A stretch of DNA of 64,000 nt from Macrostomum lignano (GCA_002269645.1 NIVC01003380.1:1-64000), one strand, 5' to 3'. Shown: positions 4,907 to 64,000, numbered from the stretch's first letter. Notes: generated by a model from the sequence alone, not told the origin. Numbers and translations are program-made.

Positions 4907-5159
4907 ATTGGACGTCTTTATTATCTATTAATAATTTTTTACAATTCAATGTAAAAAAAATATGTTGCTATTTTACTACGAGCCACGATTAAATATTGAA
5001 AGTGCATGCTGTCACCCAAAACGTCTATGAGAAAATGTGTGTCCTGAAACTGTATTTTTCGCGGAATGCATAAGCTTGAGATGCATTTCTAGCTTAAGAT
5101 GAATTTATAGCTGCAAGTAGTAAATTCCATTAAATTTGTCTTCATCGTTATGTTAAAAG

Positions 5160-9336: not shown

Positions 9337-11274
9337 TTATCTCAACCGGTCCGGTTTCTGCAATTTGTCTCTGTCCCTTAGTCGTCTAGGTTCTTTAGCC
9401 GATGTGTCAGTGCTCTTGCCACGAGTTCCGTCTGAGTCGGTTGTCTGTGGTTCGTCCTGCACGGGCACGCTTTGGGCTGCTGGATTTGAGATGTCCTCAC
9501 TCTGCATTTGCTCACGAGCCAAGTCAGTCTGATCGTCCTGATGCCTCTTCATGATTGGTGGAATTCGGGTGGGAAGAACGTCTGTCTTGACAATTTGATC
9601 AACGTGCCTCTTCCAGATTTGCCCGTTGACCTGCAGTCTGTAAGACATTGGTCCTGTGCGGGTGACCACCTCGGCAGGAATCCATCTGTTCTCTTTCTCC
9701 CTTCTGAAATCAAGCGTCAGAAGTTTTTCTCCCTCCTGGAACTCATGCCTCACTGATTTTCCATCGCGCTTGAGAACAGGAACGATTGGCGATGCGAAAT
9801 CCGATGCCTTCACCTTCGTGATGATTCCTTGGGCTTGCAAACTCTTGAGCTCGTCCTCAATGAGACCTTTGATTGCAAATGGAACTGGCCGACTTTTGAA
9901 ATACTTTGGTATTGAATTCTCCTTCAGCACTATATTGGCCTTCAATCCTTCAATGGTTCCCAATGTCTCAGCAAACACTTGCTCATGCCTCCTTACCAAT
10001 AGATCTATAGGCTGGACTAATGTGGTCACGTTCACACTCGCAAACTTGTCCCAGTCAATCTTGATCTTAGAAAGCCAGTCGCGTTCAAGCTGATTTACTC
10101 GTTCTCCTTTGCCATCAGTACAGGCAATTGGTAAAGCCTGACGTTGTGGCTAACCACGTCAATTGTTGCATCACCTAATACTGGGATTGAGTGATCCGTG
10201 TAGCTGGACAACCTTATGGTAGTCCTTGAAAGCTTCAGGCCAAGTTGCTTGCTGGTCTTCTCGTTGATCAGGGTTTTATCCACACCAGTATCCACTTGAA
10301 ATCTTACAGCTTTTCCGTTCAGTTCCAGTTCGCACTCGTATGGTGGAGAAGTGACATGCGCGACCTGTCCAGTCGAGCACACTGTGACTTCAAAGCACCC
10401 CTGTGGTGTCCCTGACTCGTACAGTTTGAGTCCCTGCTGTCTGAGCTGGTTGAACTAGTGCATAGTGCACTCTGCCGTGTCTCTTATGTCTGGACGAGCT
10501 GAGTTTCTTTTGCTTTCCACCTCCGGAATCTTTAGTCCTGTCCTTTGTGCGGCAGGCATCACTTTTATGTCCCACTCGACCGCACTTGCTGCACGTCTTG
10601 CTACGGTAGGGGCAGTTCTTTGCCCAGTGATCTTGTGCATTGCAGCGGAAGTATCCAGATTGATTATTTCTGTTGTTCTTCTCTGACAAGCCGTCTGTCA
10701 GATTTTTACTGGCTCTTGAAGACTTCACCGCCTGGATTGCACCGGTTGACAAAATTGTCACCACACCTCTTTACGCTGCTTCTATCGCAGTCGCAAGAGT
10801 AAGTGCTCCAGTTAGTGTCAGTGTGTCTTCTTGCAACAGACGCTGCTGTGTCAGGCGATTCCTTAGGCCGACAACGAACCTGTCTCTCAGTGCCTCGTCC
10901 AAGAATTCATTAAAACCACACGTGGCAGCCAACTTCCGCAGACTTGCGATGAAATTGCTCACATTTTCTCCTTCATGTTGGGCTCTGCTATGGAAGTTGA
11001 ATCTCTCGACAACGATCTTAGGCCTTGGGTTAAAATGCTCCCCCAGGGCCTTGACTTGATCGTCGAAGTTCACATCCTTGGGCTTCTTTGGTGACAGCAG
11101 GTTGCGGAGCAATTGATAGCAGTCATTACTAATCACTGTAATCATATTTTCTGACTTATGTGCCTCCTCGGTCACTTTGTTTACGACGAGAAACTGCTCG
11201 AGTTGTTCTTTATAAGCTTCCCATTGCTCCGGTTTAGCCACGTCGAACTCTCCGATTTTTACACTCGTCGCCAT
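9337..11274 (-). pseudogene. gag-pro-(deleted pol) of the LTR element
   Basis: Gag MATSVKIGEFD...ERFNFHSRAQHEGE...LRDRFVVGL. Knuckles CNAQDHWAKNC and CSKCGRVGHKSDAC. Protease RFQVDTGVDKTLI. RT start FASPIVPVLKRDGKSVR joined directly to HEFQEGE...WIPAEV...YRLQV..WKRHVDQI. Premature stop at 10771-10773 and frameshifts. Confidence 0.9.
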
Positions 11275-11531
11275 TGTTATGTCCTTTTCTTCTGCTTCTA
11301 TACCGCCTATTGCCTCCAGGCTACCATCTGACATCAAAGTCAAGTCGAAGCATTATTTAAAATACGAGCTGTTCACAAGCTTTATTTGCCTCTAGCCAGC
11401 GCACGTCTTGCTTGCCCTTTGTAATACTGTTAACCTTCGGCTCTTAAAGAAATAAAAGATTGTACCCTAGACTATAGACAAAAGAAGGGAAGCATTAGTG
11501 CGTTTGCTAAACCAAAAGTCCATGCACAACA
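11275..11531 (-). repeat. 5' LTR (257 bp)
   Basis: Direct repeat of 9059-9318. Followed on the minus strand by PBS TGGCGACGAG, complementary to the 3' end of tRNA-Ser(GCU), which overlaps the gag ATG. Confidence 0.92.
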
Positions 11532-14087: not shown

Positions 14088-15330
14088 TTATATGAGTGAG
14101 GAGAAGTGAGTGAGGAGAGAGAAGAGGAAAGAGGAGAATGAAGAGGGGAGCGAGTAGAAAGGAGAGAGTAGATCAGCGAGTAGAGGAGCGAGTGGAGAGG
14201 AGAGAGTAGATGAGCGAGTAGAGAGGAGAGAGTAGAGAGTAGAGTAGCGAGTGGAGAGGAGAGAGTAGAGGAGCGAGTAGAGAGGAAAGAGTAGAGAGTA
14301 GAGTAGCGAGTGGAGAGGAGAGAGTAGAGGAGCGAGTAGAGAGGAGAGAGTAGAGTAGCGAGTGGAGAGGAGAGAGTAGAGGAGCGAGTAGAGAGGAGAG
14401 AGTAGAGAGGAGCGAGTAGAGAGGAGCGAGTAGAGAGGAGAGTAGAGGAGCGAGTAGAGAGGAGAGAGTAGAGAGCTGCAGATGAGAGGAGAGCAGAGAG
14501 AAGAGCAGAGAGGAGTTAGTAAAGAGGAGAAATGAGAGATAAAGGAGGGAAGTGGAGAGAGAAGAGACGAGACAAGAGAGGGAGAGAGTATATAGAAGAG
14601 GGAAGAGAAGAGAAGATAAGAAAGAAGAAAGGAAAGTGAGGAGACAAAAGAGGTGAAAGAAAAGAGTACATAGGACAGAATGAGAGAACATATAAGACAG
14701 TAAAGATGACAGATGAAAGAGGGGGGTGAGCTGAGAGCAGAGACGAAAATGAACAGACGAGAGATGGGAGAGAACAGAGAACAGATGAGAGATAAGAGAG
14801 AAGAGATTATAGAGACGAGAGGAGAGACAAAGGGAGAGAGAAGTGAGTGAGGCGAGAGGAGAGAAAAGAGAATGGAAGGGAGAGAGTAGAGAGGAGAAGA
14901 AAGATAAGAGAGGAGAGATAAGAGAGAGGGGGGAAGCAGACAGAGAGGGGGGAAGCAGAGAGAGAGGGGGGAAGCAGAGAGGGGGGAAGCAGAGAGGGGG
15001 GAAGCAGAGAGAGAGGGAGGAAGCAGAGAGAAATGAAAAGAGATAAAAGAGAAGAGAAAGGAGAGATCAGAGAGCAAATAAAGACGAGAGAGAAGAGAGG
15101 TGAAGAAAAAGACAAGAGAAGAGTGGGAGGAGAGGAAAGAGAAAAGAAGAGAAAAGAGATGAGATAAGAGAGATGAAAAAGAAGAGAAATGAGGGAAGAT
15201 ACGAGAGAAGAGGGGAGAGAGGAGAGAGGAAAAAAGAGAAGAGAGGAGAGGAGAGAGAGCTCAGAGAGGAGAGACGAGGGACGAGAGAGAAGAGAGGAAA
15301 CAGAAGAGAAGATAGAAGTTTCAAAGGATC
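14088..15330. repeat. About 1.2 kb AG-rich homopurine low-complexity tract with internal tandem units
   Basis: Almost pure A/G on the + strand, with units such as GAGCGAGTAGAGAGGAGAGAGTAGA and GGGGGAAGCAGAGA. Confidence 0.95.
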
Positions 15331-17028: not shown

Positions 17029-20000
17029 ATGGAAACTAGTGACACTGTCACTGTCACTGACACTGACACTGAGGACGAGGTCGAGGAGATGGAAGTTTCT
17101 TCTGATAATGTCAATGCTATTGATAAAGCTTTGGATTCAACTTCAAGCTCACTTAGCTCAGCTATTGATTCTAGTAAGTGTGGCCTGTTGCTGTTGAGCC
17201 TGGCTGCCTGTTTGCTAATTGCCTGTTTTCAATCTTCTTTTCTTATCTTTTATTATAAATTATAAGTTCTGAAGAAAATAAATTTTAGACAGAATATTAA
17301 ACATTGAGCTAGGGACCAATATGAATAGCCTTGATTCTCAAATTTTGCTTTTAAATATATTATGCTAATCAGCTAATGCAGCCATGCCCATAGCATACAT
17401 GATACATACAGTACAGGCTACAGGCTACAGCCTTGCCTATACTTTTGTTAACATTGACAAGTCTAGTCATTAAGTCTTAAGTCTAGTCATTCATTCATGA
17501 TGATTCATGTTATTGTTATTGATTGTCAGATTCCGACAAGTAGGCCAGTTTTTATCCAATCCAAATCCAATATATGTATATGTTCTATTTTAGTGTAGTG
17601 TAGTCAAACATCAATAAGTATAAAGTATGTATATTGTTTAATTTCACATTCTATTATTTACATGAGATCTGACTCTGACTCATACATTGATTTGATAGTG
17701 ATTGATAGGTGATAGCTGATACTGCCATACTCATACTTAACTTTATTTTATTGTTGACTTATTATAAATTTTTGACTTACTTTTCTTAGACAATACAGTT
17801 AGTTAATTAGTTTTGTATATATGTAGCAATGCAATCCAAAGCTGTAGGCTGTGCCTGTAGGTAGAATGTATGTAGCATTCAAAATCAGAGTCATCAGACC
17901 AAGACCATTTTCATTATTACCATATTATATTAATCCCCGCCCTTTCTATCTATTCTATAGCAACATTATTTTAAACCCCTTAAGTAGCCCCAATAAAACC
18001 CTTTCACTAAAACAGGTTTTTCGGCTGCTTCTACTTCATCAAAGGCAGCTGGTCCTAAGACAGGTCTTAAAGAAGGCTGGGGATTTTTTGCAACCCCAAA
18101 TCAGCTGCAGCCTATTTCTAATTCTAACAATCGCAAGCGAAAGTCTGTTAGTAATTCTGGCCCAAGTCAGTTAGAAGCCAAGCAACCCAAAAGAGTAATT
18201 GCACAGGATGTGCACTACTGTTTGTCCTGCTTAAGGGCTGGTCGAAATTTGCGAAACTGCCGAACAGTCCGTGGTCTTCCACATGATCTTAATCGGCACT
18301 GTAAGAGTCAACACCAGGGGCGCAAAGGTGTTGGACATGCACCTCCTGATTTCGCTCGAAGAGATAACCAGGAGGTTCGAAGGCTGTTGAATGAGCGTGC
18401 CCTGCAAAATGTAGCTACTGTGGAAGACGAAGAGGACGACTTGAGTGCTGAGGTTGATCAGTCTGAACAGCAGCAGCAGCAGTCATCCGATCAGCAGCAG
18501 TCATCCGATCAGCAGCAGTCATCCGATCAGCAGCAGTCATCCGATCAGCAGCAGTCATCCGATCAGCAGCAGTCATCCGATCAGCAGCAGTCATCCGATC
18601 AGCAGCAGTCATCTGATCAGCAGCAGTCATCCGATCAGCAGCAGTCATCCGATCAGCAGCAGTCATCCGATCAGCAGCAGTCATCCGATCAGCAGCAGTC
18701 ATCCGATCAGCAGCAGTCATCCGATCAGCAGCAGTCATCCAATCAGCAGCAGTCATCCGATCAGCAGCAGTCATCCGATCAGCAGCAGTCATCCGGTCAG
18801 CAGCAGTCATCCGGTCAGCAGCAGTCATCTGGTCAGCAGCAGTCATCCGGTCAGCAGCAGCAGACAGACCTGCAGTGTCGTCTACAGTTGCGACTCGAAG
18901 CTGTTGATTCAGCACCAGCTCCAGAAAACATGGCTAAGAAGATCACTGCTCTGCAAAAGGCGTTCGAGTCACAGACGCAGGAGATTGTGCAGATGAAAAA
19001 ACTGCTTGAAAATATATCCGTCAATGCTGTTGCTACATCTAAATGTAGTAAGGGCAGCAATCAAGAAAATAAGTCCAAAATCGACCTCGGCAACGATGAT
19101 GTGGCGGCCACAAATAGTTTCGCTGAGTTACTGCAGTTTGAGTTTTGTTCGCTCAAGTCGTGCGAGAATGGTGACTCGATTTTTAACTGCGTTCCCTGTG
19201 TCACGTTCCTCTGCAAGTCGAAACTGATGCCTACCAACTGTACAGCCGAGCAAATCTACAGCATTCTGTAAGTCGAATGTTTTTTATATGTACTGTATGT
19301 AGAGTCCGTTTAGACGGGATAGTCTTAAAGAAGTACTTAAGGTGTTAATGTACTGAGCTTTTCACTTTTCCAGGAACCCCACCACCACTGAAAAGAATAA
19401 GTCCTTCAGCAGAGGGCTACGACTTTCAGCCGAACGAGTCGCAGGTTTGCTAAGTGGTGTGGACGAGTTCTCCAAATTTCGCAATGAACTCGTAAACCAC
19501 TGTTCGACAAGCAAGACCCACTATTCGGCTGTGAAGGACTACCGAACCGAAGTCGTACAACAGACGGCACAAGGCAAGGTTGTGCGCACCCTTCTCCGCT
19601 GTGCTATTGCGACAATTGAAATGGCTGCTGCGGGTTCGCATTACGAGACTCTAATGAGTCTGCTCGATGCGTCTGATTGTGAAGTTGGTCAGATTGGCCA
19701 TGGCTTGTAAGTTTACCTGCAAACATATCTATAAATAATTTTATTTAAATGCAATCAGATATACTTAATAAATAATAACTTTGTCATTTCACCTACCCTC
19801 CCTCCTTACAAAGTGCATTCTGCAAAGAACTTTGGAAGTTATTAGACGCCTGCGTAAACGACGAAAGTGCAGAGTTTCTGCGGTGTCCTCTGCCTTCGAC
19901 TGGACAGCCGCCTCTGCTGACCATCACCTGCGACAAAAGCACCCCAGGCCGCACAACGAATCAGGCGGCACTCCTTCTAGCTCGCTGCGAAAATGGCGAA

Positions 20001-43319: not shown

Positions 43320-43810
43320 AACGAAAAATACATGTAGTTCAACGAACGATTCAATAGGGATAGGGTTAGGGTTAGAGTTTAACTGTGCCTTAGTTAGGGT
43401 TAGGTTATGGTTAGGGTTTGAGCTTGTGCCTTTTCGAGCTTGTGATGGTTGTTGCTAAATCAGTTTTTCGACAATATGACTTTTCGACGATGTGACTTTT
43501 CGACGATGTGACTTTTCGACGATGTGACTTTTCGACGATGTGACTTTTCGACGATGTGACTTTTCGACGATGTGACTTTTCGACGATGTGACTTTTCGAC
43601 GATGTGACTTTTCGACGATGTGACTTTTCGACGATGTGACTTTTCGAGTTAGTGACTATTGAGCTTGCGATGGTGATTGTTAAACTTTTCGACGATTTGA
43701 TTTTTCGAGCCTGTGACTTTTCGAGCTTGTGATGGTGTCTGCTAAATCAGTTTTCGACGATGTGACTTTTCGAGCTATAGTGATTTTTCGAGCTTATGAT
43801 GGCGACCACT
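43320..43810. repeat. Repeat element with TTAGGG-like motifs and a 16-bp tandem array (about 10 units, 43485-43646)
   Basis: GGGTTAGGGTTAG-like motifs at 43357-43420. Unit GACTTTTCGACGATGT. Confidence 0.8.
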
Positions 43811-48632: not shown

Positions 48633-49775
48633 ATGATTTTGCCAAGAGCCTTCGCTTTTTGTCTAATTTTCGGTAGGTATCTCTCGAATTAATAATCGCT
48701 TAAAATTTTAAGAACGTTACTTAATTCATAGTTGAAAACTTTTCCAGCAACATGCAATTCGACACAAAGCAAATTCTTCAAACTGGTAGCCGGGCCGTTT
48801 GTCATTGACGACTCGGTGAGTAGCGAGGTTTTCAATGTCACTGGCATCACCTCCAGCATTGACTGCGCGGCTAAGTGCCACGCGGAGGGCTGCTCAGTGG
48901 CGGTGGCTCACGAGAGCATCGGGCTCTGCCAGATGGCCATGGTGTACGAAGGTCACTCGGCCGGGAGTCGCGTGCAGAGACTGCTGGGCTCTGAGGCCGG
49001 GGCCAAGGTGTGGACGTTCGATACCCAACAAGCAACAACTACAACAACGGTAACTACTTCGCCGCCCGAAATAACATCAACAACAGCAGACCCGCCAACA
49101 ACATCGGCAATGGTTAACCTGAACTTCAGCAGAGAGTTTTTCAGTAAGCGTCTTTGTTAATCTTTAAACGAGCATTTAATAGAAATTGAAATTGAAAAAA
49201 TTCTAGTCTTCAGTGAAAAAAACTAAAAAAATAATAATGATACTATCTTTCTAAATTTCTGTGTTCAAAGCTTCTTTAGGATCTAGAAATATTACATTGG
49301 ACTCTATAGTCACTCACTTTTTCCTAAAAACTGAAAAGGATTTTTTATTGGGCATTAGCGTCAGCGTCAGCCCGGATCCAACAATCCCTCTATGAGGAAA
49401 GACGACCATACTATTGGCGGCTGCGGAGCCGGCTGGCTGGGCAAGGCTGTCAACGCCAGAAACTTAACGACTGATGGAGACCGGGGCGGCAGCTTCGCGG
49501 ACGGCTGGTTGGGCGGCGCCCCAGCCGATGAAGGCGGCGCCGGTGCTGGCGGCTTCGGCGGCGGTGGAGGCGGTGGGGGCAAAGATTTAAAAGATGATAA
49601 TAGCGGAGGCGGCGGCGGCGGCTACAGCGGCGGCGGCGCCGGCACTGCTGGCGACCACGGTGGCGGAGGCGGCGGCTCCTTCTGCGGCGGCAGCGGCTGC
49701 GCTGCCACCAGCGGCGGCAACACCGGCAGCGATCAGGGCTTCGTCAAGGTGCAGTCGATTCCGACTTGTGGCTGA
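48633..49775 (+). pseudogene. Paralog A of the secreted PAN plus glycine-rich protein, with exon 3 and the start of exon 4 deleted
   Basis: Exon 1 at 48633-48672 (MILPRAFAFCLIF, signal-like) and exon 2 at 48748-49143 (PAN plus Thr linker) are open. The last-exon sequence starts abruptly at about 49366. The nearby AG acceptors at 49358, 49364 and 49370 are out of phase. Confidence 0.75.
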
Positions 49776-51480
49776 AAATTTTACGACTTAATTTTCGTCG
49801 ATTCAGTAGAAGATTTTCAGCAGAGACCAGTTTCAGTTTGCAAAATTAATTGGCAAGAGTTGAGGCATTCGAGAACTTTCTTTGCTTCAGGCTCAGGTAA
49901 CGGCGAAAAGAAACTTCATGGTTTATCTTAATAAGGGAGCTTTGATTGCCCAATTCAAAATCTTGGACGTTAAGAAAATGATGCACTTTGTGTTAATGTA
50001 GATCGTCACTCGTAGGATTGCAAAAATTTGGGAAGAAGAACCAATTTAAAAAGAATAATATGGGTACATTGATGACAGCGATCCTTATTCTATATTCTAT
50101 AAATGAAACAAAAAAACTTACATGCAAATTTTTATGTTTTATAATGTTGTTTGAATTTTCTAACTATATACATGGATTTCGACGCATATAATTATAATTT
50201 TATACTTTAACAGTGTATGACCTGCCTATTAAATTCTGACTATCTATCAATCTATTCATGTAATGTAGCACTAGTTTCACTAAATTTGTTGATTGCAAAT
50301 ATTTGTGTTTATTTTATTCTTTTTCTCTTTTCTTTTTCTGAAATCGTGTTTTCAAAAGATCAATTTACGCAATGTAAACGCGAATATTTCTGTAGTGCTA
50401 TTTGCCGATTAAAAATGTTTATTTATAATCAATCTTTGTGCGGAAACCTGTCATAGAACTCAGTCACAACATAAATTTCAGTTTTCTATTCTTTGTTTTA
50501 TTCTTGTTTCGCGTCTTATTTCCAATAATTATTTTCTAATAAAATTTAAAACTTCTCTTTTAATTTTTAAAATTTACTTCATAAACACTGTTAAAATAAT
50601 AAACATGTCGATTCATCTGTCATCTTCGAAAATCTGAGCGGGAGCAACTGAAAACTTAGTAGGGTACGAAATAAATTATAGCTGTGTAGAGAGGAGGATG
50701 ATGGATTTCATAATCCGTAAGGCTTTTAGATGTTTGGTTAGTCAGTGAAGAGAGTTTGATTTTGGTTTAAGTGCTTGGCGTATGCGAGCTTTTAAAAGCT
50801 GTATCTGGAATATTCGACGATTTTAACAAATATGCGGTATTTTATTATGTACAGCAGTAGCTATTAGAAGCAAATATTGATAGCTAGAAGTGTTACAGGC
50901 CTCTTAGCTCTCTGTTTAACAATCCCACTGCTGCAATCAAATTTGTTGTAAGAGGGGTCGGGGTTGCCGGGGATTTCTTAGGATTTGGAGAGAAATATAC
51001 AATTTCTACTACTAGAAGGAGTAAGCCTTAGGTTGCTCCTGGTGGCGTGGTGTGTCCGAGCGGCAAGGCACTATATTTCTACTCAGTCCGGATATCTAAG
51101 GAGGGGAAGGAAATAAGGAGGGGAAGGGGAATAAGGAGGGGAAGGGGAATAAGGGCTTCGCGGTGGATCAGAATTGCCTGGGAAACTGGCGCACTAGGGG
51201 AATTCTAATAACTGATAAGGGACGCTGACATGGGAGGGATGCGCTTAATAGGGAATTGAATGAAAGCCGGGTGCCTAATAGTTGGGGGAGTTAAGTGGGT
51301 AAGTGGGATAAGTGGGAGTTAAGCTCTACCTCCCGTCTCCCGAAAAGCCTAATGGAATAGGAAGGTAGAGTAATCTTAACCACTAGCCTCCCGTGCCTAT
51401 TTTTGCTCACACCCATTACCTCCCACAGCAGCTCTGCTGCCATAGAGTGTTCAAGCAGAAGCTAAAAAAGCTTGAGGCAC

Positions 51481-54400
51481 CCCTCTGGTAAATAAACCAG
51501 ATAACACCACAAGATAACATTCGCTCAAACAAGATAACATGCCCTATTCCGGTTATGCAAAATGTTATCTTGTATGAATCTTGTTTGCGTGACGAAATCT
51601 TACGTTTCCTTGTTTCAAACAAGATTCAAAAAGGATTTGCTGACCAGATAACAGTCGGGTAATTCATGCGAATCCTGCAGGGAAACATCGTGTTATCCTG
51701 TTTGTTATCTTGTTTGTTATCCTGTCTGGCAAAAAGGATTCGCTGACCAGGTAACAGTCGGGTAATTCATGCGAATCCTGCAGGGAAACATCGTGTTATC
51801 CTGTTTGTTATCTTGTTTGTTATCCTGTCTGGCAAAAAGGATTCGCTGAGCAGGTAAAAGTCGGGTAATCCATGCGAAAGAAGCCGGAAGGCATTGACAT
51901 CAAATTTCGCAGTAAAGATGCGTATAAGAAGTTGGTGATTCAAGATTTTATGAGTAGCATCTCTATATTTAACAGCGGGTTGTACTTTGTAAGCGCCTTG
52001 TACAAACTAAACAAGGAACAGGAACAAGCTCAACAGGAACGAAAACTTCTGGAGAACAGCGTGGCATACGTATGAGTTTCGACAGTCCAGTTATAAGTAG
52101 ACCTACTTATACTGTGGATACTAACTGATACTACTGAATTGGTGATCTGCTGCGAGCTGGTGCTGAGTCGCAGGTCGGACCTGCTGTACTCGGACGCGAC
52201 TCTGATGGCAGTCGACGCGTGAGCCAGACGTTTGAAAGATCGGGTCGCGCGCACGGAAGGCGATTAATGAGACCACTGACGGGGGCTTGCATTATATGCC
52301 GGCGCAATGGAACGACTCTGCATTATTAAAGTTAAATTAAATGGCGATGGAAGGCAGTTTCTCCAAAATATACACAGTTATAAAGAAACAGTAATGTACA
52401 TACACACTCGATCGCCCAGCTCTAACAGACAGCGACGGTTCGCCGACAATCATTACCAGATTGTACGACTGTTCACTAGTAATGTCAGCTACGTCGATAG
52501 AATTGTCATTCGTAGCATAGTCGTCGTCCGGAATCAACTGGCTTTCGTTGATCGGCTGCTCGTAGACCGGAGACATAGTGAATGGTGTATCATCTGATGC
52601 TCCGGCTCGCGCGGCGATGGCTTCGTTGCGTCCACGAAATGCCGACTACGCTGGAAACTCTTACCTAATTGTCTTCGCAATCCCGTATGCCAACGGTAAT
52701 ATCCAACCGACTTGGCGTTCCAGATGTCGCTAGTGCGATGGACGACATGCCAGTGGTAGTCAAACCTCTCGCACACAATCAGGGCGCAACAATTTTTCAA
52801 TTGTCACCTGTACGGAGGATGGGCACAGCCTCACATTACGGACGCTACAGAGCCGCCGAAAAGCAGATCAATTCACCTTGCAATTTCGAGGCTTTATTAC
52901 CCCTCGGATTAAAGATTGACCCGCGTAGTCAAATAAAAGTGACTACTCTTAGCCGCTGCCTTGAGCCACAAAAGACGCGAGGTTTGATTACCCCTCATAG
53001 GTCAGCATTTTCAGTCAACTGCTCAACTTTGATTCATCGGTTGAAGCGGGGTTCAATTATCACTCACTGGTGACCATACACCAACACCGCAGACGCTTTA
53101 GACAACCCAATGGAACATGCTCTAGCAAGAGCTAGAATAACGTCTGTCTTAAAAAAGGCTTACCTTAGAACTGGGCCAGTAGGAGCTTTTGGAACCATGC
53201 CACAGCTCCATCTAGACACCCAGCTGCACCAGATAATAGGGTATTCTGATACACTAAGTAACCGCGACAGACTACATGCCATTGGGAGTCAAACCTATCC
53301 AGCACAATAAGAATGCAATAGTTTGTCGGAGCAAACAAAGCTATCACCTGCAGGGAGGGTGGGCACGGCCTCACATTACGAGCGCTAGCGTTTGCTGATA
53401 TATGGCACTTTACCCCTCGCAGGTCAGCTTATCAGCTGCCTTGAGTCCCAACAGAAGCGAGGATTGATTATCCATCGCAGGTCAGCTTATGAGCTGCCTT
53501 GAGTCCCAACAGACGCGAGGATTGATTATCCATCGCAGGTCAGCTTATTAGCTGCCTTGAGACACAACAGACGCGAGGATTGATTATCCATCGCAGGTCA
53601 GCATATTAGCTGCATTGAGTCCCAACAGACGCGAGGATTGATTATCCATCGCAGGTCAGCTTATCAGCTGCCTTGAGTCCCAACAGAAGCGAGGATCGAT
53701 TATCCATCGCAGGTCAGCTTATCAGCTGCCTTGAGTCCCAACAGAAGCGAGGATCGATTATCCATCGCAGGTCAGCTTATCAGCTGCCTTGAGTCCCAAC
53801 AGAAGCGAGGATCGATTATCCATCGCAGGTCAGCTTATCAGCTGCCTTGAGTCCCAACAGAAGCGAGGATCGATTATCCATCGCAGGTCAGCTTATGAGC
53901 TAGCCTTGAGTCCCAACAGACGCGAGGATTGATTATCCATCGCAGGTCAGCATAGCAGCTGCCTTGAGCCACAACAGAAGCGAGGATTGATTATCCATCG
54001 CAGGTCAGCATAGCAGCTGCCTTGAGCCATAACAGAAGCGAGGATTGATTACCCCTCGCAGGTCAGCTTATCAGCTGCCTTGAGCCACAACAGAAGCGAG
54101 GATTGATTACCCATCGCAGGTCAGCATAGCAGCTGCCTTGAGCCACAACAGAAGCGAGGATTGATTATCCATCGCAGGTCAGCATAGCAGCTGCCTTGAG
54201 CCATAACAGAAGCGAGGATTGATTACCCATCGCAGGTCAGCATAGCAGTTGCCTTGAGCCACAACAGAAGCGAGGATTGATTACCCATCGCAGGTCAGCA
54301 TAGCAGCTGCCTTGAGCCACAACAGAAGCGAGGATTGATTATCCATCGCAGGTCAGCTTATGAGCTGCCTTGAGCCATAACAGAAGCGAGGATTGATTAC

Positions 54401-55394
54401 CCATCGCAGGTCAGCATAGCAGTTGCCTTGAGCCACAACAGAAGCGAGGATTGATTACCCATCGCAGGTCAGCATAGCAGCTGCCTTGAGCCACAACAGA
54501 AGCGAGGATTGATTATCCATCGCAGGTCAGCTTATGAGCTGCCTTGAGCCACAACAGAAGCGAGGATTGATTATCCATCGCAGGTCAGCATAGCAGCTGC
54601 CTTGAGCCACAACAAACGCGAAGTCCAGTCTTATCCATAACTTCATAGAGATTCGAGTCAATGGGAGCTGATCCCTGTGGATTTGCCGAATCACTTGGTC
54701 TAGATCACTGAGGAATTCCGACTGAACTCCTGAAATCTCATCCAGAATATTTTCATTTGGAAAACCTGAAATTTGGGTCTACAATTAGAATTTAGCAGCT
54801 GTTCCAGGTTAAAAATTTCGGAAAATGCAGCCGGAACCGCTTTCCTTTTTCCCGAACTTTTGCAGGATCACATTTCCGGAAAAAGGGGCTATTCCGGGCT
54901 AAAAATGCTGATCCGGGCCTTCATTTGGAAATCATTTGGAAATGATTTAAATCTTGTACTGTTATCTGTCTTTCAAACAAGATTCGCACCATGTTATCCT
55001 GTGAAATTCCGATTCAAACAAGATTCAATCAAACAAGAAAACAAAAAATTACCTGGTGGCGAATCTTGTACTGTTATCTGATTTTCAAACAAGATTCGCA
55101 CCATATTATCCTGTGAAATTCCGATTCAAACAAGATTCAATCAAACAAGAAAACAAAAAATTATCTGGTGGCAAATCTTGTCATGTAATCTGATTTCTAA
55201 GCAAGATTCGGGCCATGTTATCTGGTGAAATTCAGATAACTCACCAGATAACAGTCAAACAAGAAAACAAAAAATTACCTGGTGACGAATCTGGTGGTTT
55301 CACCAGTTTCGCACCTCAAACAAGGAAATCGGTAGTGAATCTGACAAGATTCGCAAATTATATTGTGGTGTTATCTGGTTTATTTACCAGAGGG
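51481..55394. mobile_element. Non-autonomous CMC/EnSpm-like TIR element (3914 bp)
   Basis: Perfect 32-bp TIR CCCTCTGGTAAATAAACCAGATAACACCACAA. 2-bp TSD AC. Long subterminal repeats (about 102-bp units on the left, about 120-bp units on the right) rich in GTTATC/AAACAAGAT. No transposase. Confidence 0.8.
53417..54615. repeat. Minisatellite, about 21 units of 57-58 bp
   Basis: Unit TCGCAGGTCAGCTTATCAGCTGCCTTGAGTCCCAACAGAAGCGAGGATTGATTATCCA, and a 57-bp variant ...CATAGCAGCTGCCTTGAGCCACAACAG.... No spacers. Confidence 0.95.
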
Positions 55395-56302
55395 ACGTCT
55401 CACTCCCTTACCCTCCCACAGTTTTTAAGCCAAAAAGCCAATGCTTTATTTTAAGCTTTTTTTGCTTTATTTTATTAAATATGAATTAGGAAGTGTCCTG
55501 GACAAATTTAACATTCTTTTTCACGTGAAGAGAATCTATGCAGAATAACAAATTTCATGATTCATATTTAATAAAATAAAGCAAAAAAAAGCTTAAAATA
55601 AAGCATTTTACTGAAAGTTTGTTAGGAATAAACAAATTTAATGCTTGTTCCTACGATTCGTACGACAGAAACTAAAGTGTCTGTAGAAGTGTCTGAATAA
55701 GTGTCGGCGAATGTTTTTTTTGACTCAAGGCTATTTTTAGAACAAACTGTTCTTTTGGCGCCAGGCCTATAATTTCAAGCCAGCACAAGTTGCCTTCTAG
55801 AGAGGCTAATACGCTTGTATTTATACTCTTATTACTAAAAATGGCGGATAGTTTAAAACAAAAATATTCTTATTGAAAAGTTTTTATCAGAGATGCGCGC
55901 TGAAGTTACTAATTTTCTAACAAAATAAACATTTAATATACGTATTATTACTAATAATAAAGTGTCAGCAGATTACTCGTAAAATACGCAAGAAAAAGGC
56001 GGTAAGTATTAAGATTCTATTTATGCGCAAATAATAATCGATAAGGCAAGAGTTAATAGATAAGGCTAGTTTTGAGAACAAAGAATTAGGTATGCAACAA
56101 TGATTAAAAGAGTTATGTACTCGTAGTTATACAATTAACATTATAATAGGCCGTTACAGAAGCAAGCAGGATCTTAGTTTGTATCCTGACACACCAAGAA
56201 GAGGCTACTCCAGTTCCTTCCTTGAGCCGCTTAAGGTCCCCTTTCCTGGTTGTCAGCCATCGTACCCAACTGCCACGACTGCTCCAAAAAATCTATCGCA
56301 TC

Positions 56303-56508
56303 GTGTCTAACAGGTTGCATTGTTTCTAATATGTTGCATTGTGTCTAACAGGTTGCATTGTTTCTAATATGTTGCATTGTGTCTAACAGGTTGCATTGTT
56401 TCTAATATGTTGCATTGTGTCTAACAGGTTGCATTGTGTATAACAGGTTTCATTGTGTCTAACAGGTTGCATTCTGTCTAACAGGTTGCATTGCGTCTAA
56501 CGGTTGCA
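56303..56508. repeat. 19-bp tandem repeat, about 11 units, two alternating variants
   Basis: GTGTCTAACAGGTTGCATT alternating with GTTTCTAATATGTTGCATT. Confidence 0.9.
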
Positions 56509-56650
56509 CATCTGGCCCAATTAGGGTAGGTGCAATCAATTATTATTATTATTATCGTGTCCAGCAGACTGTGTTCTGTTGTTGAATTAACGAACGCAGA
56601 AACAAGATAGATAATTATCCGGGCGCTCAGTGGCACCAAAAGAAGGCTTG

Positions 56651-56768
56651 GCCAATAGGAGGACGGCTCGTATATTTATGCTCGCGGGGAAGGAAAGTTC
56701 TAGAAAGACCGGGAAAGGAAACTTCTGGAACTATGCGTAAACAAGTCCTGCTGTGGAAGTTTCTAGAA
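56651..56768 (-). promoter_or_regulatory. Cluster of three perfect heat-shock elements next to TATA-like and CCAAT motifs
   Basis: GAAnnTTCnnGAA at 56693-56705, 56718-56730 and 56756-56768. CATAAATATA on the minus strand at about 56671-56680. CCAAT at 56652. Confidence 0.65.
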
Positions 56769-57669
56769 ACGCTGTCCCCGAACTATCCCTACGCATTGCA
56801 TGCCTTTGCAATACACAACAGACTGCATCGATGTCTATCAGCTGATCCAATCTTGCATGTTATTTGTACCTCACTTTTTCCGCTGCACTTCCAAAACTAA
56901 ACAACGGGCACATTATAGGTATCTGAGTAGCTAGCTGATAGTGCTTCATGCAAAAAATGTGCAAAACTACGTGGACAAGGGTAGTAGTATATTTCGTATA
57001 TTCGGGTAGTGAGTTTCAACTGTTTCAATTAAAATAGACGCGTCGTAGCGGATAAATACGGTTGAAAAGTTAAACAAAAAGTTTAGTTTAGAAGAAATAA
57101 ACAAAAAGAATAAGCTGGACTTGAGTAACAAAATAAAGATTAAGAATCTGGTACAAAAGAAAAGCATTGATTGACGTGCCGGCATTTGAGAAAAATAACT
57201 TCATAAACAAGATAAATTATCACCAGAGAAAATTAAGTATATGTGGACTACTATTGTCAAATAAAAAGCTTTTTTCAGTAAAAAATCGATTATAACAAAC
57301 AATGGCGAAAGCCAAAGGTGCCTTTTGAAAAAAAAGTTTAAATATTCTGGCGACAACGAACACTACAGCATTCAATAGGGCATGCGAGTGAAATTGGAGG
57401 CAGAGAAAAGTTTAATAATGATAATTTTGGCTTAGTTTGTAAAAATTTCCTTAAAACGATTGTAACATTAAAATTCAAAAACAGAAAAAGCGTTATTCAA
57501 ACTTTTGTTGACTCTGCCACAAAAAATCTTGCATGACTTCGAAAAGAGATTTTATAAATAAATTAACAAATAAACTTTTTAAAATGATTTGTTATAAGGG
57601 CTTTGGCAATTTTCGCTTCCAGTTTCCTTCGATACGCCATCATTTTAGCTTTTCTCCCAAAAAGCCCCA

Positions 57670-60142
57670 CTAATTGCATTGATCAATCGGCCACACCTTG
57701 ACGAAGCCCTGGTCGCTGCCGGTGTTGCCGCCGCTGCTGGCGGCGCAGCCGCTGCCGCCACAGAAGGAGCCGCCGCCTCCGCCGCCGTGATTGCCAGCGA
57801 CGCCGGCACCGCCGCCGCTGTAGCCGCCGCCACCGCCACCGGCGTTGAGACTCGTCATCGGGTAATTAGCTCCTCCGCCTCCGCCACCGAAGCCGCCAGC
57901 AGTCCCAGCGCTGTCACAAATCCAGCCATCAGCCAGACTGCCGCCTCGACCTCCATCGTACATGTTACTTGGTGGGTTTGCTGCCTTTCCCAGCCACCCG
58001 GCGCCGCAGCCACCGACGTAAGAGTCTGTTTTCCTTCCAGCGGGGTTGTTGGATCCGGGCTGACCGTTCGCTCCTCCGTAGCCGTAGTATGGAGTGTCAC
58101 CGGGTATCGAAGCCGTACCGGATGTTCCTCCGGAACCGGCGGCGCCTGAAATATTAACCATGGAGGGGTATATTTTACGAGATATTAGAGTCATTGATGG
58201 ACAACCGAAGCAGAAAGACCCTAAAACTTGATTTTTTCAGAAATGAGCTGCTAGACACCGATTAAGGAACACTTATTAGTTGTGGTATCTGTCCTAGCTA
58301 TAGTGTTCTACCGTAATTACATGTACGACTATGCAGTTACAGGAAAATTTGGCGCAGCATTTTTTTGAGCAAAATTCGGTTACGGATTGCGACTACGGAG
58401 ATCCTGCCTAGCTAGTGGCGGCTACGGTTACGGATCAAGGACGGCTTAAGTGGAAGGACAGGAAACCTCGTTTTTGGAAAATGTTTGAAGGCAGGTTTCC
58501 TCCGAAAAAAATACACAGCGGAGATAGGAAGTTTTCATTTTTTCAGCACAAAAATTGTTATTGCTTTTGATAGGAGGCAGATCCAGTGTTCGTCTTTTGA
58601 TAATTTGCGCCTTTCTTATTGCTCTATTGATATTCATAAAGCTTCTAGTTCAGAAAAATCGGATTCTATGTTAATTTTTTATTCTACCCACGTAGTCCAA
58701 TTTTCGTCGCTTTTTAGTGCAACCACCCAGCTTCCTTCTAGTGCCATTGTGAGAATAATGGCGTATCATTTGTGTACATATGTTACTCGGCTCCACTTTA
58801 TGGGCTTAAGTTGACGGGCCCATTGCGATGTTTTTCCAACTTCTTTAAATTCGAATGAAACATTTACCACTAACAATACTACATTTCACTCTCATAGTCG
58901 CTGGGGACAGGGCCGGGGTAGCAAGGGGTCTCGTACTGCAATGTGTTTTAGGCAGCTAAAGAAAAAATCTAAAAAAACATTCAACTATGTTTGATAGTCT
59001 CTATTGTTATTCATGTCAGAGATTCAGCAGGAAAAGTAGCCCCTTTTAGCAAGAATTCTTAGACTAGAAGCTTTGTTACATGTGCCTCAGCATTCCACCT
59101 TGATCATTGGCAGGCCCGATCACACACATACCGACAGAACATTTTTAGTGTATTGGATTAACAGGCATTAAAAGCATTACCATTAGTAGTGTAACAGGCG
59201 CCTCCACCACCGCCGGCGGCCAGAAGCAGTGTTGGCAAACCAGTCGTGTTAAATGTGTACACGAAGCTGCCTCCGCCTCCGCCAGCTCCTGTGTAGCCCC
59301 CCCCAGCTGAGCGATCCACCAGCACCGCCCTGCTGTCCGACAGCAATGGTCAGCAGGATACCGGCTGTCAGGCTGAAGGTGCCAGCGATGGCGGCTCCGC
59401 GACCGCCTGATTTGGCTGTGCTGGAGCCGCCGCTGGCACCGGCAGCTTCAATTCGGTAGCACCCGGTGGAGTTGATCAGCAGCTGCTGGATGGAGCCGGT
59501 CCGGCCGGTTCCGGTGTCTGAAATTTACGACTTCTGCTGTTAGGGAACTGTGCCAACGATCTTTTATTACTTTGGCTGGCGATAAAGTCAGGATCTTGAG
59601 CTTTGTCCACCATGTCAACAGCTTGCTTCTTTCTTGCTTGCTTCACACATTTTCTCGACTTTCCAGACAAGCCGAAGTGAAAGAGTAGAAATAAATGCTC
59701 ACTTATAAAAGTCCTGTTGTCCCGAGGTCCCGAGCTTATCTTGTCGAACGTCCAGACCCTGGCTCCGGCCTCCGAGCCCAGCAGCCTCTGCACGCGACTC
59801 CCGGACGAGTGGCCTTCGTACACCATGGCCATTTGGCAGAGCCCGATGCTCTCGTGAGCCACCACCACAGAGCAGCCTCTCGATAGGCACCTCGTCACGC
59901 AGTCGATCTCGGAAGCCACCCCGGTCACATTGATCACTTCGCTGCTCACCGAGGCGTTGATGGTAACGGGCTCATCGACCAGGTAGTACTCTTGCTCAGG
60001 AGCTTGGCTGGCAGTCACGCAGGTGGCTGAAATCAGCAAATTAATTGGGAGTTCAGGGATATTTGGGTCAAAGTGAGTTGCGGAATGGATTAGGTATCTT
60101 ACCGGTGGAGAGCAGGCTAAGTAGTACTATTTGCGAAATCAT
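57670..60142 (-). CDS. Paralog B: secreted PAN/apple plus ALK/LTK-like glycine-rich protein, 4 exons, with a +1 frameshift in a G8 run
   Basis: Exons 60142-60103 (MISQIVLLSLLST), 60026-59703, 59517-59181 (337 nt, one base too long) and 58145-57670. YRIEAAGASGG...GTFSLTAG.LLTIAVGQQG...GGGGSFV...LLLAAGGGGG matches the ALK/LTK glycine-rich domain pattern. Confidence 0.75.
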
Positions 60143-61923
60143 TTCAGTAAAGAAAACTAGGATTGAATATTATAAAATCAGGGTTAGTCTTGATTTGTAT
60201 CGCCTTGAAAAAAGACTTGAACCCCTGCTTATTAGGAGAGCCTCACAATTTCTGTGGTGCGAGAATTTTGCTAAATAGCCTAAGTATACCACAAGGAAGG
60301 CAGGTAAACAACCTCTTCATCGCTATTTTTACCCTTCGGTCAATACGCCAGCCTCTCAATCCTGTCAGGCTTCCCTGGCAGCTTTCAGCTTTTGTCTCAG
60401 TTTTTGCCAGTGAATTTGGGAGCCTCTTAAAACAAAAGCAAAGACCAGTAAGGCGGCAGGCGAGTCTTGCTGAGCAAAGAACAATGATCAGGAGTAGAAA
60501 CTCTTGTTGGGTGTTGAGAAGTTAGAAGCATCTTCCTCCTCTTTTGGCGGGGCCGGGTTAATAACTTAGAAGATCGCCTTGGCAACAAAGGCACTTGGCA
60601 ACTAAATGGACGAGAGGGGCAGGAGGACAGGTGCTCAGCGTCAGCAGGGTAGGAGGCTTCTCTCCTCCCCTTTCAATTTTCTGCTGACTTTCAGACCCTT
60701 TTAGTTGAGCTGACAATACTCACTCAAAACACTTCTGTACTGCTTTTTAAGCACATTAAGCACAGGTTTTTTGAGAAACAGACTTTCCTAGAACCGAAGA
60801 AGTTGCTTCCTTAACCGATGTTCGGTAGTATGGCCCATGGGCGACATTACTTGACAGAGAAGATTGTTAACCGCAAACATTTAACTTTAGCTTAAATAAT
60901 TAAAATGGAACACCTCTGCGGCGTGTACAACGATTTTCAAATAACAATAAGAATCAGGTGTTAAAATTCTTTTGTGCAATGTTTATTTGTTATAAAGAAC
61001 TGCATAGTGCACAAGCTGCGATCGAAATCGAACAAATCGGGTTGTTAATGATGCAGAGCTTAGAGAAATGGCAACATTTAAAACTTGCACAAGTAAACAA
61101 CTTCTCTTGAATCTCCCTAATTGCATGTTGCACAACTTCCACTTTACACTGCGGGGCGTATATTACGTAATCACCACGCTGAGCGATAGGGTGTAACAGC
61201 AAAATTACAAATTCGAATTACACCCTCATGGGGAGGTCCGAGAGAAGTTGCTTACTGGCCCAAAGGGCCCAAATTAAATATCACAGATTGAAAAACCTTT
61301 TTTACTTTGTGAAAGAAAAATACAGCAAAAAAAGCAAAAAGAACAGGAGCAACTATGAAGGCAATTTCTAGCAGAAAGTACATGATGTTTACGAAGAAGA
61401 AAATGTACTAGTAGTAATAATAACCGTATGCATGTGCTATATAGAATTGTTGTGTCAGGTCACGGGTAGGGGCTGAAGCCCAGCGGTCCAACGTGGCGCT
61501 CTGATGTGCCAGCAGCCCAGGCTCGATACCAAGTGCAGTCACATTAATTTGGGGCTGAATTGGAATCTCGGCTTGGCTCTGCTCCTGAAATTAACGTCTT
61601 TGAGGCCCAACCCCCAAGGCACAGTGAAGTGTACATGCCTAACGATAAATAAAGTCAGGGCCGCTGTAAACTCCTGTGTGAGTGTGTGCCTGTGCGTATG
61701 ACTGCGTACGTATCCGCGGGCTTGTGTGCCTGCTCAGGGGATTCGGCGGAATGGGCGCCAGTAATGGCTCTCGCCGGTTGTGTGCCAATGTCGCGCCTAA
61801 AGTGCGCCAGGCTACACACAACCGCCTGCCTCTAACTAACTAGAAATCTTACTTAGGCTGGTAAATAACATTGACAAAAACGTTCGAATTCTCAACCCAA
61901 AGTTGTTTTATCATCAAAACTGT

Positions 61924-63631
61924 TCAATCGCAATCCAGGACCGACTGCACCTTGACGAAGCCCTGGTCGCTGCCGGTGTTGCCGCCGCTGATGGCGGCGC
62001 AGCCGCGGCCGCCGCAGAAGGAGCCGCCGCCTCCGCCACCGTGATTGCCAGCGGCGCCGCCACCGCTGAAGCCGCCGCCTCCGCCGCCGCCATTGTCGTT
62101 CGTGGGGGTGCTGCCGCCACCGCCGCCGCCTCCGAACCCTCCGGTTCCGCCGTTATAGTTGGTGTTAACGGCTCCGCCGACCCAGCCGTCAGCCAAGCTT
62201 CCACCGTGGTCGCCGTCGTGCTGCGTGGCTTTAGCGTTGGTATTCTTGCCAAACCAGCCGGCGCCGCAGCCGCCGGGGTAGTAGTCTTCGTCATTATTAT
62301 CAGAATTGCTGAAGCCCGCCTGACCGTTGCTGCCGCCGTAGCCAGAGTAATCAGAATCCCCAGCAACTGAGTTCGTGCCTCTTTCGTCTCCTGAGCCATC
62401 AGCACCTGAATTTTGAAACACGACAGGAGCTTTAACTTTGATAACTGACTACTAATAGTAAGTAGTAAGCTTGTAAATAACCAATCAATCAATAAGTCAA
62501 TCAATCAATCAACCAATCCATCAATCAAAGGTTAGGGCCATAGTCATTGCTTTTGCTCATTCTCCTCTAGCTGTACATACTTTAAATTTGCTCAGTCACT
62601 CGTTCGTTAAATAATTCAACCCTGATGATGTCAAATAATGAGTCCTAATCAAGAAAATAATTGTTAATTATCTCTTTAATTTTTTTTAATCCGCTTCATT
62701 CTTCTTTGATAACCAATGCTCGCGTTCGCATGAAGGCTCTCATCTCAAACAGGTGATTCAGCAGTCAGACGAGACCCTGCTCTGGCACTTACCAGCGTCA
62801 TAGTAGCAGCCACCGCCGCCTCCGCCAGCAGCTAGCAGCAGCAGCGGGTTGCCAGAGGCGTTGACAGTGTACACAAAGCTGCCTCCGCCGCCACCTCCGC
62901 CGCCATCACCGCTAGCGGGGCCCCCCTGCTGTCCGACAACAATGGTCAGCAGGGTGCCGGCAGTCAGGCTGAAGTTGCCTGCCATGACAGCTCCTCGACC
63001 GCTCGGTTGTCGAGCCCCGGGACTCCCGCTGGCACCGGCAGCTTCAATCCGGTAGCAGTGGGTGGTGTCGATCAGCAGCTGCTGGATGGTGCCGTTTCTA
63101 CCGGTGCTGGAGTCTGGAAGATGGAGTTTAGCATAGAGAGATAAATATTCGCAGATCTAACGAAACTTTGGAATTTTGCAGAAGTCCTTACTGAGAAACT
63201 CAATGCTGAAGTTTAGGTGAATTAGCGGTGCGTCGAACGTCCAGACCCTGGCTCCGGCCTCCGAGCCCAGCAGCCTCTGCACGCGACTCCCGGACGAGTG
63301 GCCTTCGTACACCATGGCCATTTGGCAGAGCCCGATGCTCTCGTGAGCCACCGCCACTGAGCAGCCTCTCGACAGGCACCTCGTCACGCAGTCGATCTCG
63401 GAAGCCACCCCGGTCACATTGATCACTTCGCTGCTCACCGAGGCGTTGATGGTAACGGGCTCATCGACCAGGTAGTACTCTTGCTCAGGAGCTTGGCTGG
63501 CAGTCACGCAGGTGGCTGAAATAAGCCAATTAATTGGGAGTTCAGGGATATTTGGGTCAAAGTGAGTTGCGAAATGGATTAGGCAGCTTACCGGTGGATA
63601 GCAAACAAAGTATTATTAGTTGCGAAATCAT
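61924..63631 (-). CDS. Paralog C: intact secreted PAN/apple plus ALK/LTK-like glycine-rich protein, 4 exons, 388 aa
   Basis: Exons 63631-63592, 63515-63192, 63113-62793 and 62405-61924 splice GT-AG, all phase 1, giving 1167 nt with no internal stop. Signal-like N-terminus MISQLIILCLLSTATCVTA. PAN-like DCVTRCLSRGCSVAVAHESIGLCQM. Glycine-rich domain ends FVKVQSVLDCD*. No transmembrane helix. Confidence 0.88.
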
Positions 63632-64000
63632 TTCAGCTAAAAAAGTTCTACGAGTAGTTCGGAATGGAATAAAAATTTTAAGATTTTTCGTAATCTTATC
63701 TGTTTCGTCTCTTGCTGTTAAATTTACTTTTTTATACCTAATTGAAAAGTTTCTCCTCTTCCTTGAGAGAGTGGCGTCCATATTTCCGTGAGAGGCGTCA
63801 GCTAAATAGTCAAAATGCTTGGACCACAATGAAGACGCAACCCTCTCAGCGAATCAATAAGCCAGCCTTTCTCAAGCGCTGCATTTGCTGTCTGAAGATG
63901 CACGCCTGCTTTATGTTTCCTGTTCCTATTTTTGACAGCGGCTGGGACTAACTTGGGAATAAAAACAAAAGAAATATTTTCTACAGAAGTAACTTTAGCT

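Follow-up and report, generated by a model that had tools for sequence, protein, structure and literature searches.

We analysed a 64-kb stretch of the genome of the flatworm Macrostomum lignano (GCA_002269645.1, NIVC01003380.1:1-64000), which we call the window and which is eukaryotic DNA with short GT-AG introns. A tblastn search of the window with the product of its most complete member, C, located three homologous genes, at 48633-49775 on the plus strand (A), 57670-60142 on the minus strand (B) and 61924-63631 on the minus strand (C). C adjoins B, 1.8 kb upstream of it, and the 3' ends of A and B face each other across 7.9 kb of satellite-filled spacer. Our main finding is that these genes are members of a family whose products are predicted to carry a signal-like leader, a PAN/apple-like module and a glycine-rich domain (GRD) of the type known from the receptor kinases ALK and LTK, and to stop there. 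The features of the locus are as follows.

63592..63631, minus strand: C exon 1, 40 nt, with the ATG and a hydrophobic signal-like peptide MISQLIILCLLST; phase-1 donor GTAAGC.
63192..63515, minus strand: C exon 2, PAN/apple-like module and a short linker, with core cysteines at positions 56, 60, 65 and 77 of the protein; phase-1 donor GTAAGG.
62793..63113, minus strand: C exon 3, N-terminal half of the GRD (NSSTGRNG..YRIEAAGASG..LTIVVGQQGG..GGGGGGGGSFVY..LLLAAGGGGGG).
61924..62405, minus strand: C exon 4, C-terminal half of the GRD (GGCGAGW..GGFGGGGGGG..GGGGGGGFSGGG..GGGGGGSFCGG..GFVKVQSVLDCD); stop TGA.
60103..60142, minus strand: B exon 1, 40 nt, MISQIVLLSLLST; donor GTAAGA.
59703..60026, minus strand: B exon 2, PAN-like, 97% amino acid identity to C as far as WTFD and a divergent linker thereafter; donor GTGAGC.
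59181..59517, minus strand: B exon 3, N-terminal half of the GRD, its frame broken by one extra G.
59297..59304, minus strand: G8 homopolymer of B, a +1 frameshift; with seven Gs it reads ...SLSWGGYTGAGGGGGSFVYTF... / ...VGQQGGAGGSLSWGGYTGAGGGGGSFVYTF...
57670..58145, minus strand: B exon 4, C-terminal half of the GRD; stop TAG.
48633..48672, plus strand: A exon 1, 40 nt, MILPRAFAFCLIF; donor GTAGGT.
48748..49143, plus strand: A exon 2, PAN-like, with a 31-aa Thr-rich insert and NLNFSREFF; conserved phase-1 donor GTAAGC at 49144.
49368..49775, plus strand: A exon 4 remnant, part of the C-terminal half of the GRD, a 134-aa open frame ending in TGA; an in-frame AG acceptor would place the exon start at 49402.
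63232..63644, minus strand: near-identical B/C tract, 96% DNA identity to 59743-60154 of B, from 13 nt upstream of the ATG to WTFD.

All three copies begin with an exon of exactly 40 nt that runs from the ATG to a phase-1 GT donor (48633-48672, 60142-60103 and 63631-63592), continue with a PAN-like exon 2 and end at a homologous stop codon, two to six residues past the motif GFVKV. C consists of four exons separated by three canonical GT-AG introns, all in phase 1, and its spliced frame of 1167 nt encodes 388 aa followed by TGA. The same four-exon structure is found in B (spliced length 1177 nt), where the G8 run breaks the frame within exon 3; with one G less, a frame of 391 aa is restored, and B is thus either a pseudogene or the victim of a homopolymer assembly error. 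A has lost exon 3, with its motifs YRIEAAGA, VGQQG, GGGGSFV and LLLAAGGGGG, as well as roughly the first 30 codons of exon 4, and tblastn with C found no other match to residues 122-229 of C in the window. What A keeps of the GRD is its C-terminal part alone (about 124-134 aa, homologous between about 49368 and its stop at 49775), which a gap of 220-260 nt separates from exon 2; the Thr-rich insert, mucin-like in composition, follows the PAN module within exon 2. Enumeration of GT/AG pairs indicates that the phase-1 donor at 49143 can be joined in frame to the acceptor at 49402, for a product of 269 aa, and such a splice is possible. Only C is demonstrably intact, and the locus is best explained as a small birth-and-death cluster in which C is intact, B is frameshifted by a single base and A has an internal deletion.

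An earlier note on this DNA had described three tandem paralogs at these positions, with a shared signal-like first exon of 40 nt, a product of 388 aa for C and a full GRD signature in each copy. The positions, the first exon and the length of C all agree exactly with our reconstruction. The signature is complete in C, interrupted by the frameshift in exon 3 of B and deprived of exon 3 in A; with three copies present and one demonstrably intact, the description of a tandem family is thus confirmed in part.

Pairwise comparison of the copies gave a ratio of non-synonymous to synonymous divergence (dN/dS) of 0.30-0.40 in every exon pair, at a synonymous divergence (dS) of 0.65-0.93 in the glycine-rich exons. 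Among the 73 codon pairs that specify Gly in both B and C, 37 differ synonymously (a proportion, pS, of 0.51), so the glycine runs are kept at the protein level and not as simple DNA repeats. The same count rules out an artefact of low-complexity DNA as the source of these runs. Taken at the level of codon substitutions, the comparisons show that the coding family is real and under purifying selection. They also bear on the suggestion that the whole cluster is non-functional and made of decaying duplicates, which the frameshift of B, the missing exon 3 of A and the abundance of transposons and satellites in the surrounding window would all invite. Such a dead cluster is nevertheless very unlikely, given the low dN/dS at this degree of divergence, the complete frame, canonical splice junctions and full set of conserved Cys and Gly motifs of C, and the fact that the defect of B is one homopolymer base, possibly an assembly error.

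The divergence between B and C is not uniform. Beginning 13 nt before the ATG and continuing as far as WTFD in exon 2, with exon 1 and intron 1 included, the two are 96% identical in DNA, compared to 72-82% outside this 5' tract; the boundary is sharp, and dS is 0.13 within the tract versus 0.75-0.93 in the GRD exons. On these contrasts in identity and dS, the 5' part of B and C looks like the product of gene conversion or mosaic duplication. A second, milder patch of low synonymous divergence between B and C covers the last 50 or so codons of exon 4. The spacer between the 3' ends of A and B carries, within 51627-56508, satellites of 103 nt (2.4 copies), 58 nt (21 copies), 112 nt (3 copies) and 19 nt (11 copies), the 58-nt array occupying 53410-54621 with 94% matches.

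In ALK and LTK, the GRD is the ligand-binding polyglycine-II bundle, which contacts the cytokines. Three approaches lead to the solid prediction that the glycine-rich region of the window proteins, in which Gly accounts for 31% of the GRD, is a true domain of this type. First, C matches the Pfam family PF12810 (ALK_LTK_GRD) over residues 142-298 at 26.2 bits (E=9.7e-6), a small margin over the cut-off of 24.5; relatives of C score between 11 and 37 bits. Second, C aligns with the human ALK ectodomain (7NX3) from end to end, if weakly (phmmer, 18 bits, E=0.0098), and a family profile (A5) built from the window exons and their closest relatives finds, among all PDB sequences, LTK at 1.5e-11, ALK at 7e-10 to 2.5e-9 and Caenorhabditis elegans SCD-2 at 6e-5, the next match being at E=0.38. 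Third, we examined an AlphaFold2 model of P0001, a M. lignano homolog about 45% identical to C, computed with the window exons in the alignment. Its predicted local distance difference test score (pLDDT) exceeds 90 across the GRD, which has beta-strands at both ends and a long stretch free of regular secondary structure between them, and all 21 PDB matches of the model at E<=1e-3 are ALK/LTK ligand-binding domains (E from 2e-11 to 4e-7, target template modelling (TM) scores 0.41-0.63, 22-26% identity). The GRD is accordingly modelled as a compact unit, in which TNF-like beta-strands would enclose a polyglycine-II lattice. Since every significant PDB match of the model is ALK or LTK, the fold assigned in the earlier note holds.

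Set beside ALK and LTK themselves (PF12810; PDB 7NX0, 7NX3, 7LRZ and 7LIR), the window proteins thus contain a homologous domain of matching predicted fold, with the motifs Y.I.A.GA.GG, VGQ.G, GGGGGSFV, LL.AAGGGGG, G.GAGW, GGFGGGGGG and GGGGGYSGGG in common. They differ in having a PAN module in front and in lacking MAM/LDLa domains, the EGF-like module, the transmembrane helix and the kinase; in addition, they have about 25 residues fewer ahead of the first conserved strand.

The N-terminal module is, with moderate confidence, PAN/apple-like, as judged from its predicted fold and cysteine pattern and not from Pfam. Four cysteines in the arrangement DCxxxCxxxxC...C are conserved between the window copies and their M. 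lignano relatives; numbered along the exon translation, C42, C46, C51 and C63 are invariant or nearly so in both. Modelled by itself (pLDDT 74.5), exon 2 of the window gives one helix and several strands, and the top 44 or so PDB matches of this model are all PAN, apple or WSC modules, including the HGF N domain, plasminogen, the A4 domain of factor XI, yeast Wsc1, the galactose-binding SML-2 and Toxoplasma MIC4. The likeness to these modules (the PAp domain of plasminogen and the WSC domain of Wsc1 among them) would lie in the predicted alpha/beta fold and in the four core cysteines of the putative helix-to-sheet disulfides; in sequence the module is too dissimilar for the PAN models of Pfam to match, and no outer pair of fifth and sixth cysteines could be assigned. 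A word-based homolog search with the PAN exon found nothing. Among the relatives, P0245 reaches PAN_1 (21.6 bits versus a cut-off of 21.4) and P0141 (E=7e-4) and P0194 (E=0.01) approach it, and in UniRef some relatives go by the name 'Apple domain-containing protein' or 'WSC domain-containing protein'.

C is predicted to be secreted and to have no membrane anchor. In a Kyte-Doolittle scan, C is hydrophobic in two places: the N-terminal leader (1.9 over residues 1-19, followed by the small residues VTA|SQ) and residues 163-181, which align to a beta-strand region of ALK. Its C-terminus, six residues past the last conserved strand motif GFVKVQ, is polar and has no hydrophobic tail. The seven NxS/T sequons and twelve cysteines of C, ten of them beyond the likely cleavage site, fit a putative secretory glycoprotein, and the relatives have hydrophobic leaders like that of C. 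Scanned against Pfam, C yields PF12810 alone, with no EGF-like module after the GRD and no MAM/LDLa domain; in ALK and LTK, an EGF-like module follows the GRD (PMC10605310). A tblastn search of all 64 kb with the human ALK kinase domain gave nothing better than E=2.1.

It is conceivable that the three genes are only the 5' parts of longer membrane receptors, with transmembrane and kinase exons lying beyond the annotated stop. One M. lignano protein, P0012, has hydrophobic segments past its GRD and carries the automatic name 'Protein kinase domain-containing protein'; Pfam, however, finds no kinase in it. In-frame stops stand at the homologous position in A, B, C and the M. lignano gene models, kinase similarity is absent from the window at the level given above, B starts 1.8 kb downstream of C, and the 3' ends of A and B face the satellite-filled spacer. 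For this window such a receptor is extremely improbable, and the idea is largely refuted. The earlier note's statements that the proteins stop right after the GRD and have neither membrane anchor nor kinase therefore stand, on the homologous stops, the hydropathy scan of C and the kinase search.

The window genes are not isolated in their species. The best matches of C are predicted proteins of M. lignano, 40-47% identical over the full length and none above about 50%, and dozens of catalogued predicted proteins of this worm consist of a signal-like leader, a PAN-like module, a GRD and a stop (for example A0A1I8HRN4, A0A1I8GD17, PAA78312.1, which is BOX15_Mlig009354g1, and PAA61162.1). The gene BOX15_Mlig009354g1 (405 aa) has the same four exons as C: exon 1 is 40 nt long, exons 1 to 3 all end in phase 1 (exon 2 immediately ahead of NSSTGR and exon 3 at the glycine where it also ends in C), and the frame stops after the GRD. 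The 40-nt exon is thus a conserved feature of the family, and this independent gene model confirms that the protein ends without a kinase. Another, more distant member in M. lignano has one intron only. These Macrostomum 'Apple domain-containing' proteins resemble C in domain order, exon number, first exon and intron phase, and differ from it in sequence, at the identities just given. We conclude that this is a gene family expanded in Macrostomum-type flatworms.

The earlier note held that the stand-alone architecture was unknown from any characterised protein. Indeed, we found no experimental characterisation of it and no paper on a stand-alone animal GRD protein, and the family goes unmentioned in a M. 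lignano seminal-fluid screen with its supplements and in the searchable flatworm adhesion screens; dozens of database proteins of M. lignano nonetheless have this architecture. The PAN-plus-GRD arrangement is therefore already present in public protein sets, unstudied, and the window adds further members and a tandem cluster with gene conversion and decay. Source databases also name relatives 'PE-PGRS family protein' or, wrongly, 'receptor protein-tyrosine kinase'. The latter name has been given automatically to kinase-less GRD proteins or fragments of both M. lignano and phages, others being called 'Calmodulin' or 'Dirigent protein'; such naming appears to reflect either systematic misannotation or gene models that are chimeric.

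Outside Macrostomum, the domain is widespread. A profile search of 1.84 billion representative proteins returned 6544 relatives at E<=1e-3, of which 140 reached E<=1e-30; many relatives are giants in which the domain occurs three to seven times. In 43 top relatives, Pfam identifies EGF, C-type lectin, PKD, F5/8 type C, carbohydrate-binding and type IX secretion system (T9SS) sorting domains as partners, and the 25 co-occurring families listed for these proteins include no kinase. One transmembrane relative of 2116 aa combines five GRD copies with EGF repeats and no kinase, and P0245, a protein from a sequencing-run assembly, unites PAN_1 and the GRD by Pfam. The P0001 model has 84 matches at E<=1e-3 among predicted viral structures, the best being stand-alone proteins of phages and giant viruses (E down to 6.8e-17); several of these are annotated as structural proteins of the virion or as minor tail proteins. 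With 28-31% identity as opposed to 22-26%, the best viral GRDs are at least as close to the flatworm domain as those of ALK and LTK, and a bacterial stand-alone GRD matches C at 76 bits. The bacterial, phage and giant-virus proteins of PF12810 share with the window proteins the kinase-less GRD fold and extracellular or virion contexts (T9SS or PEP-CTERM tails, virion, minor tail), and differ from them in having neither PAN module nor introns and in being, in many cases, multi-domain or multi-GRD giants.

Family size and spread had been proposed in the earlier note as a check, and the outcome is thousands of kinase-less GRDs in bacteria, phages and other animals. On this survey and the viral matches, kinase-less GRDs are the rule, and ALK and LTK the studied exception. 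A survey of polyproline-II bundle domains lists ALK and LTK alone for this fold (bioRxiv 10.1101/2023.11.25.568672). A contig of 494 kb (ENA ERZ26692634) carries at 10001-10939 an intronless gene for a stand-alone GRD protein of 312 aa with no PAN module; its neighbours encode immunoglobulin and collagen domains, so it probably comes from another animal with a kinase-less GRD gene.

The position of the flatworm GRD among these relatives is relevant to one of the roles put forward in the earlier note, that of a soluble decoy or modulator which would compete with membrane ALK for a ligand of the Jeb, HEN-1 or ALKAL type. The GRD is homologous to the ligand-binding module of ALK and LTK, and the protein is apparently secreted and without kinase, as a decoy would have to be. 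The similarity to these receptors is, however, remote (a phmmer score of 18 bits, and 22-26% identity when the structures are aligned) and no closer than that to phage GRDs (28-31%, E down to 7e-17) or bacterial ones (76 bits); the EGF-like module that should follow the GRD is absent; and dozens of divergent paralogs, some undergoing pseudogenisation, are ill-suited to a decoy whose effect would depend on dosage. Moreover, the ALKAL ligands are vertebrate proteins. A decoy role is, if anything, even less probable than a dead cluster, and that proposal is left unsupported.

In our judgement the window protein is probably, although far from certainly, a soluble extracellular binding protein of lectin- or adhesin-like character. 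PAN, apple and WSC modules dock elsewhere on glycan or protein surfaces, and here the PAN module may likewise attach to a surface such as that of a microbe, the matrix, the glycocalyx or mucus. The glycine lattice, being rigid, would then offer a stable platform from which variable connecting loops contact a second partner, as the GRD of ALK and LTK does for cytokines and, plausibly, as do phage virion and tail proteins of the same fold; a PAN-GRD protein of this kind would have no signalling activity of its own. The connecting loops are the segments that differ most between the paralogs. An analogy, and no more than that, is offered by the adhesin tip gp38 of S16/T2-type phages, where variable loops are mounted on a rigid glycine-rich polyproline-II lattice (bioRxiv 10.1101/2023.11.25.568672); its topology is different from that of the window GRD, and gp38 is not among the PDB matches of the P0001 model.

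Several observations weigh against a binding protein of this design. The Pfam models PAN_1 to PAN_4 give no match up to E<=10, whether to C, to its PAN exon or to that of A, so that the PAN/apple-like exon described in the earlier note is supported by its cysteine pattern and, tentatively, by its predicted fold, and not by Pfam; the structural matches of the exon model, consistent as they are in kind, have weak scores (E 0.008-0.4, TM about 0.5). The GRD fold was modelled on the homolog P0001 and not on the window protein itself. The leader of C is signal-like, a putative signal peptide by hydropathy and position. A sliding scan found no GRD window of 30 codons with dN/dS >1, and thus no diversifying selection on the loops. 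Finally, two of the three copies may be dead.

The same features may be read in terms of material rather than recognition. The proteins would then be a structural component of secreted material, such as mucus, the content of rhabdites or adhesive glands, or egg shell, with a polyglycine-II lattice that provides stiffness or self-association and a PAN module that cross-links to glycans: building blocks and not specific binders. The glycine content of the GRD, the mucin-like Thr-rich insert of A and the size and tandem duplication of the family would suit this role, and glycine-rich secreted proteins are common in animal adhesives. Yet the glycine runs are part of a globular ALK-like fold modelled at high confidence, not long repetitive tracts of low complexity, the proteins are small (388 aa) and without repeats, and the searchable adhesion and seminal-fluid screens of flatworms make no mention of the family. 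We consider a structural role unlikely, but the most credible of the alternatives.

If the window protein is indeed a soluble binding protein, the idea may be extended, at the cost of becoming rather improbable, to the family as a whole. PAN-GRD proteins would form an unrecognised class of soluble recognition molecules of animals, in which paralog-specific loops on a polyglycine-II platform bind ligands of microbes or mating partners and the PAN module provides an anchor in mucus or glycocalyx. Were this true, the ligand-binding domain of ALK and LTK would be a receptor-borne offshoot of an ancient and widespread adhesin module, and not an invention specific to kinases.

To date, work on the GRD of ALK and LTK has been confined to its role in binding cytokines within these two receptor kinases. 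Together with its relatives in Macrostomum and thousands of homologs that lack a kinase, the window locus indicates that the fold is also used alone as a putative secreted module of animals, here combined with PAN. The partner of one such protein, if found, would give a first function for a stand-alone animal GRD and inform how ALK and LTK gained their ligand-binding domain. For annotation, the family is a warning, as many kinase-less GRD proteins bear the automatic name of a receptor protein-tyrosine kinase.

The rest of the window is rich in transposons and repeats, and a search against Rfam found no RNA family in it. A Helitron-like transposon remnant, a string of open reading frames (ORFs), extends over 1836-6226 on the plus strand and includes a PIF1-like helicase (3293-4051, PF05970, E=1e-66), Pif1 2B and UvrD_C regions (4193-4906) and an RPA-type OB fold (5804-6226); the PIF1 ORF has matches of about 45% identity in many phyla. 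Retrotransposon fragments lie on the minus strand at 9337-11343: a gag-like ORF (10771-11343, Retrotrans_gag/PNMA), a zinc-knuckle-like ORF (10390-10764) and a further ORF at 9337-10035 with no Pfam match. About 1.2 kb of purine-rich GA/GAGAGAG microsatellite at 14094-15309 accounts for the GC skew of 0.545 and AT skew of 0.415 in the 14-16 kb bin, and an 18-nt tandem repeat at 18474-18860 (21.5 copies, 98% matches), located in an ORF of 353 aa, encodes (SSDQQQ)n. Long ORFs of 115-264 aa are dense on the plus strand between 20201 and 29053, the four tested having no Pfam match at E<=0.01; the series could represent a gene with several exons or a mobile element as yet unclassified. Finally, an interstitial telomere-like stretch of TTAGGG/TAGGG at 43355-43432 is followed by a 16-nt tandem repeat at 43465-43794.

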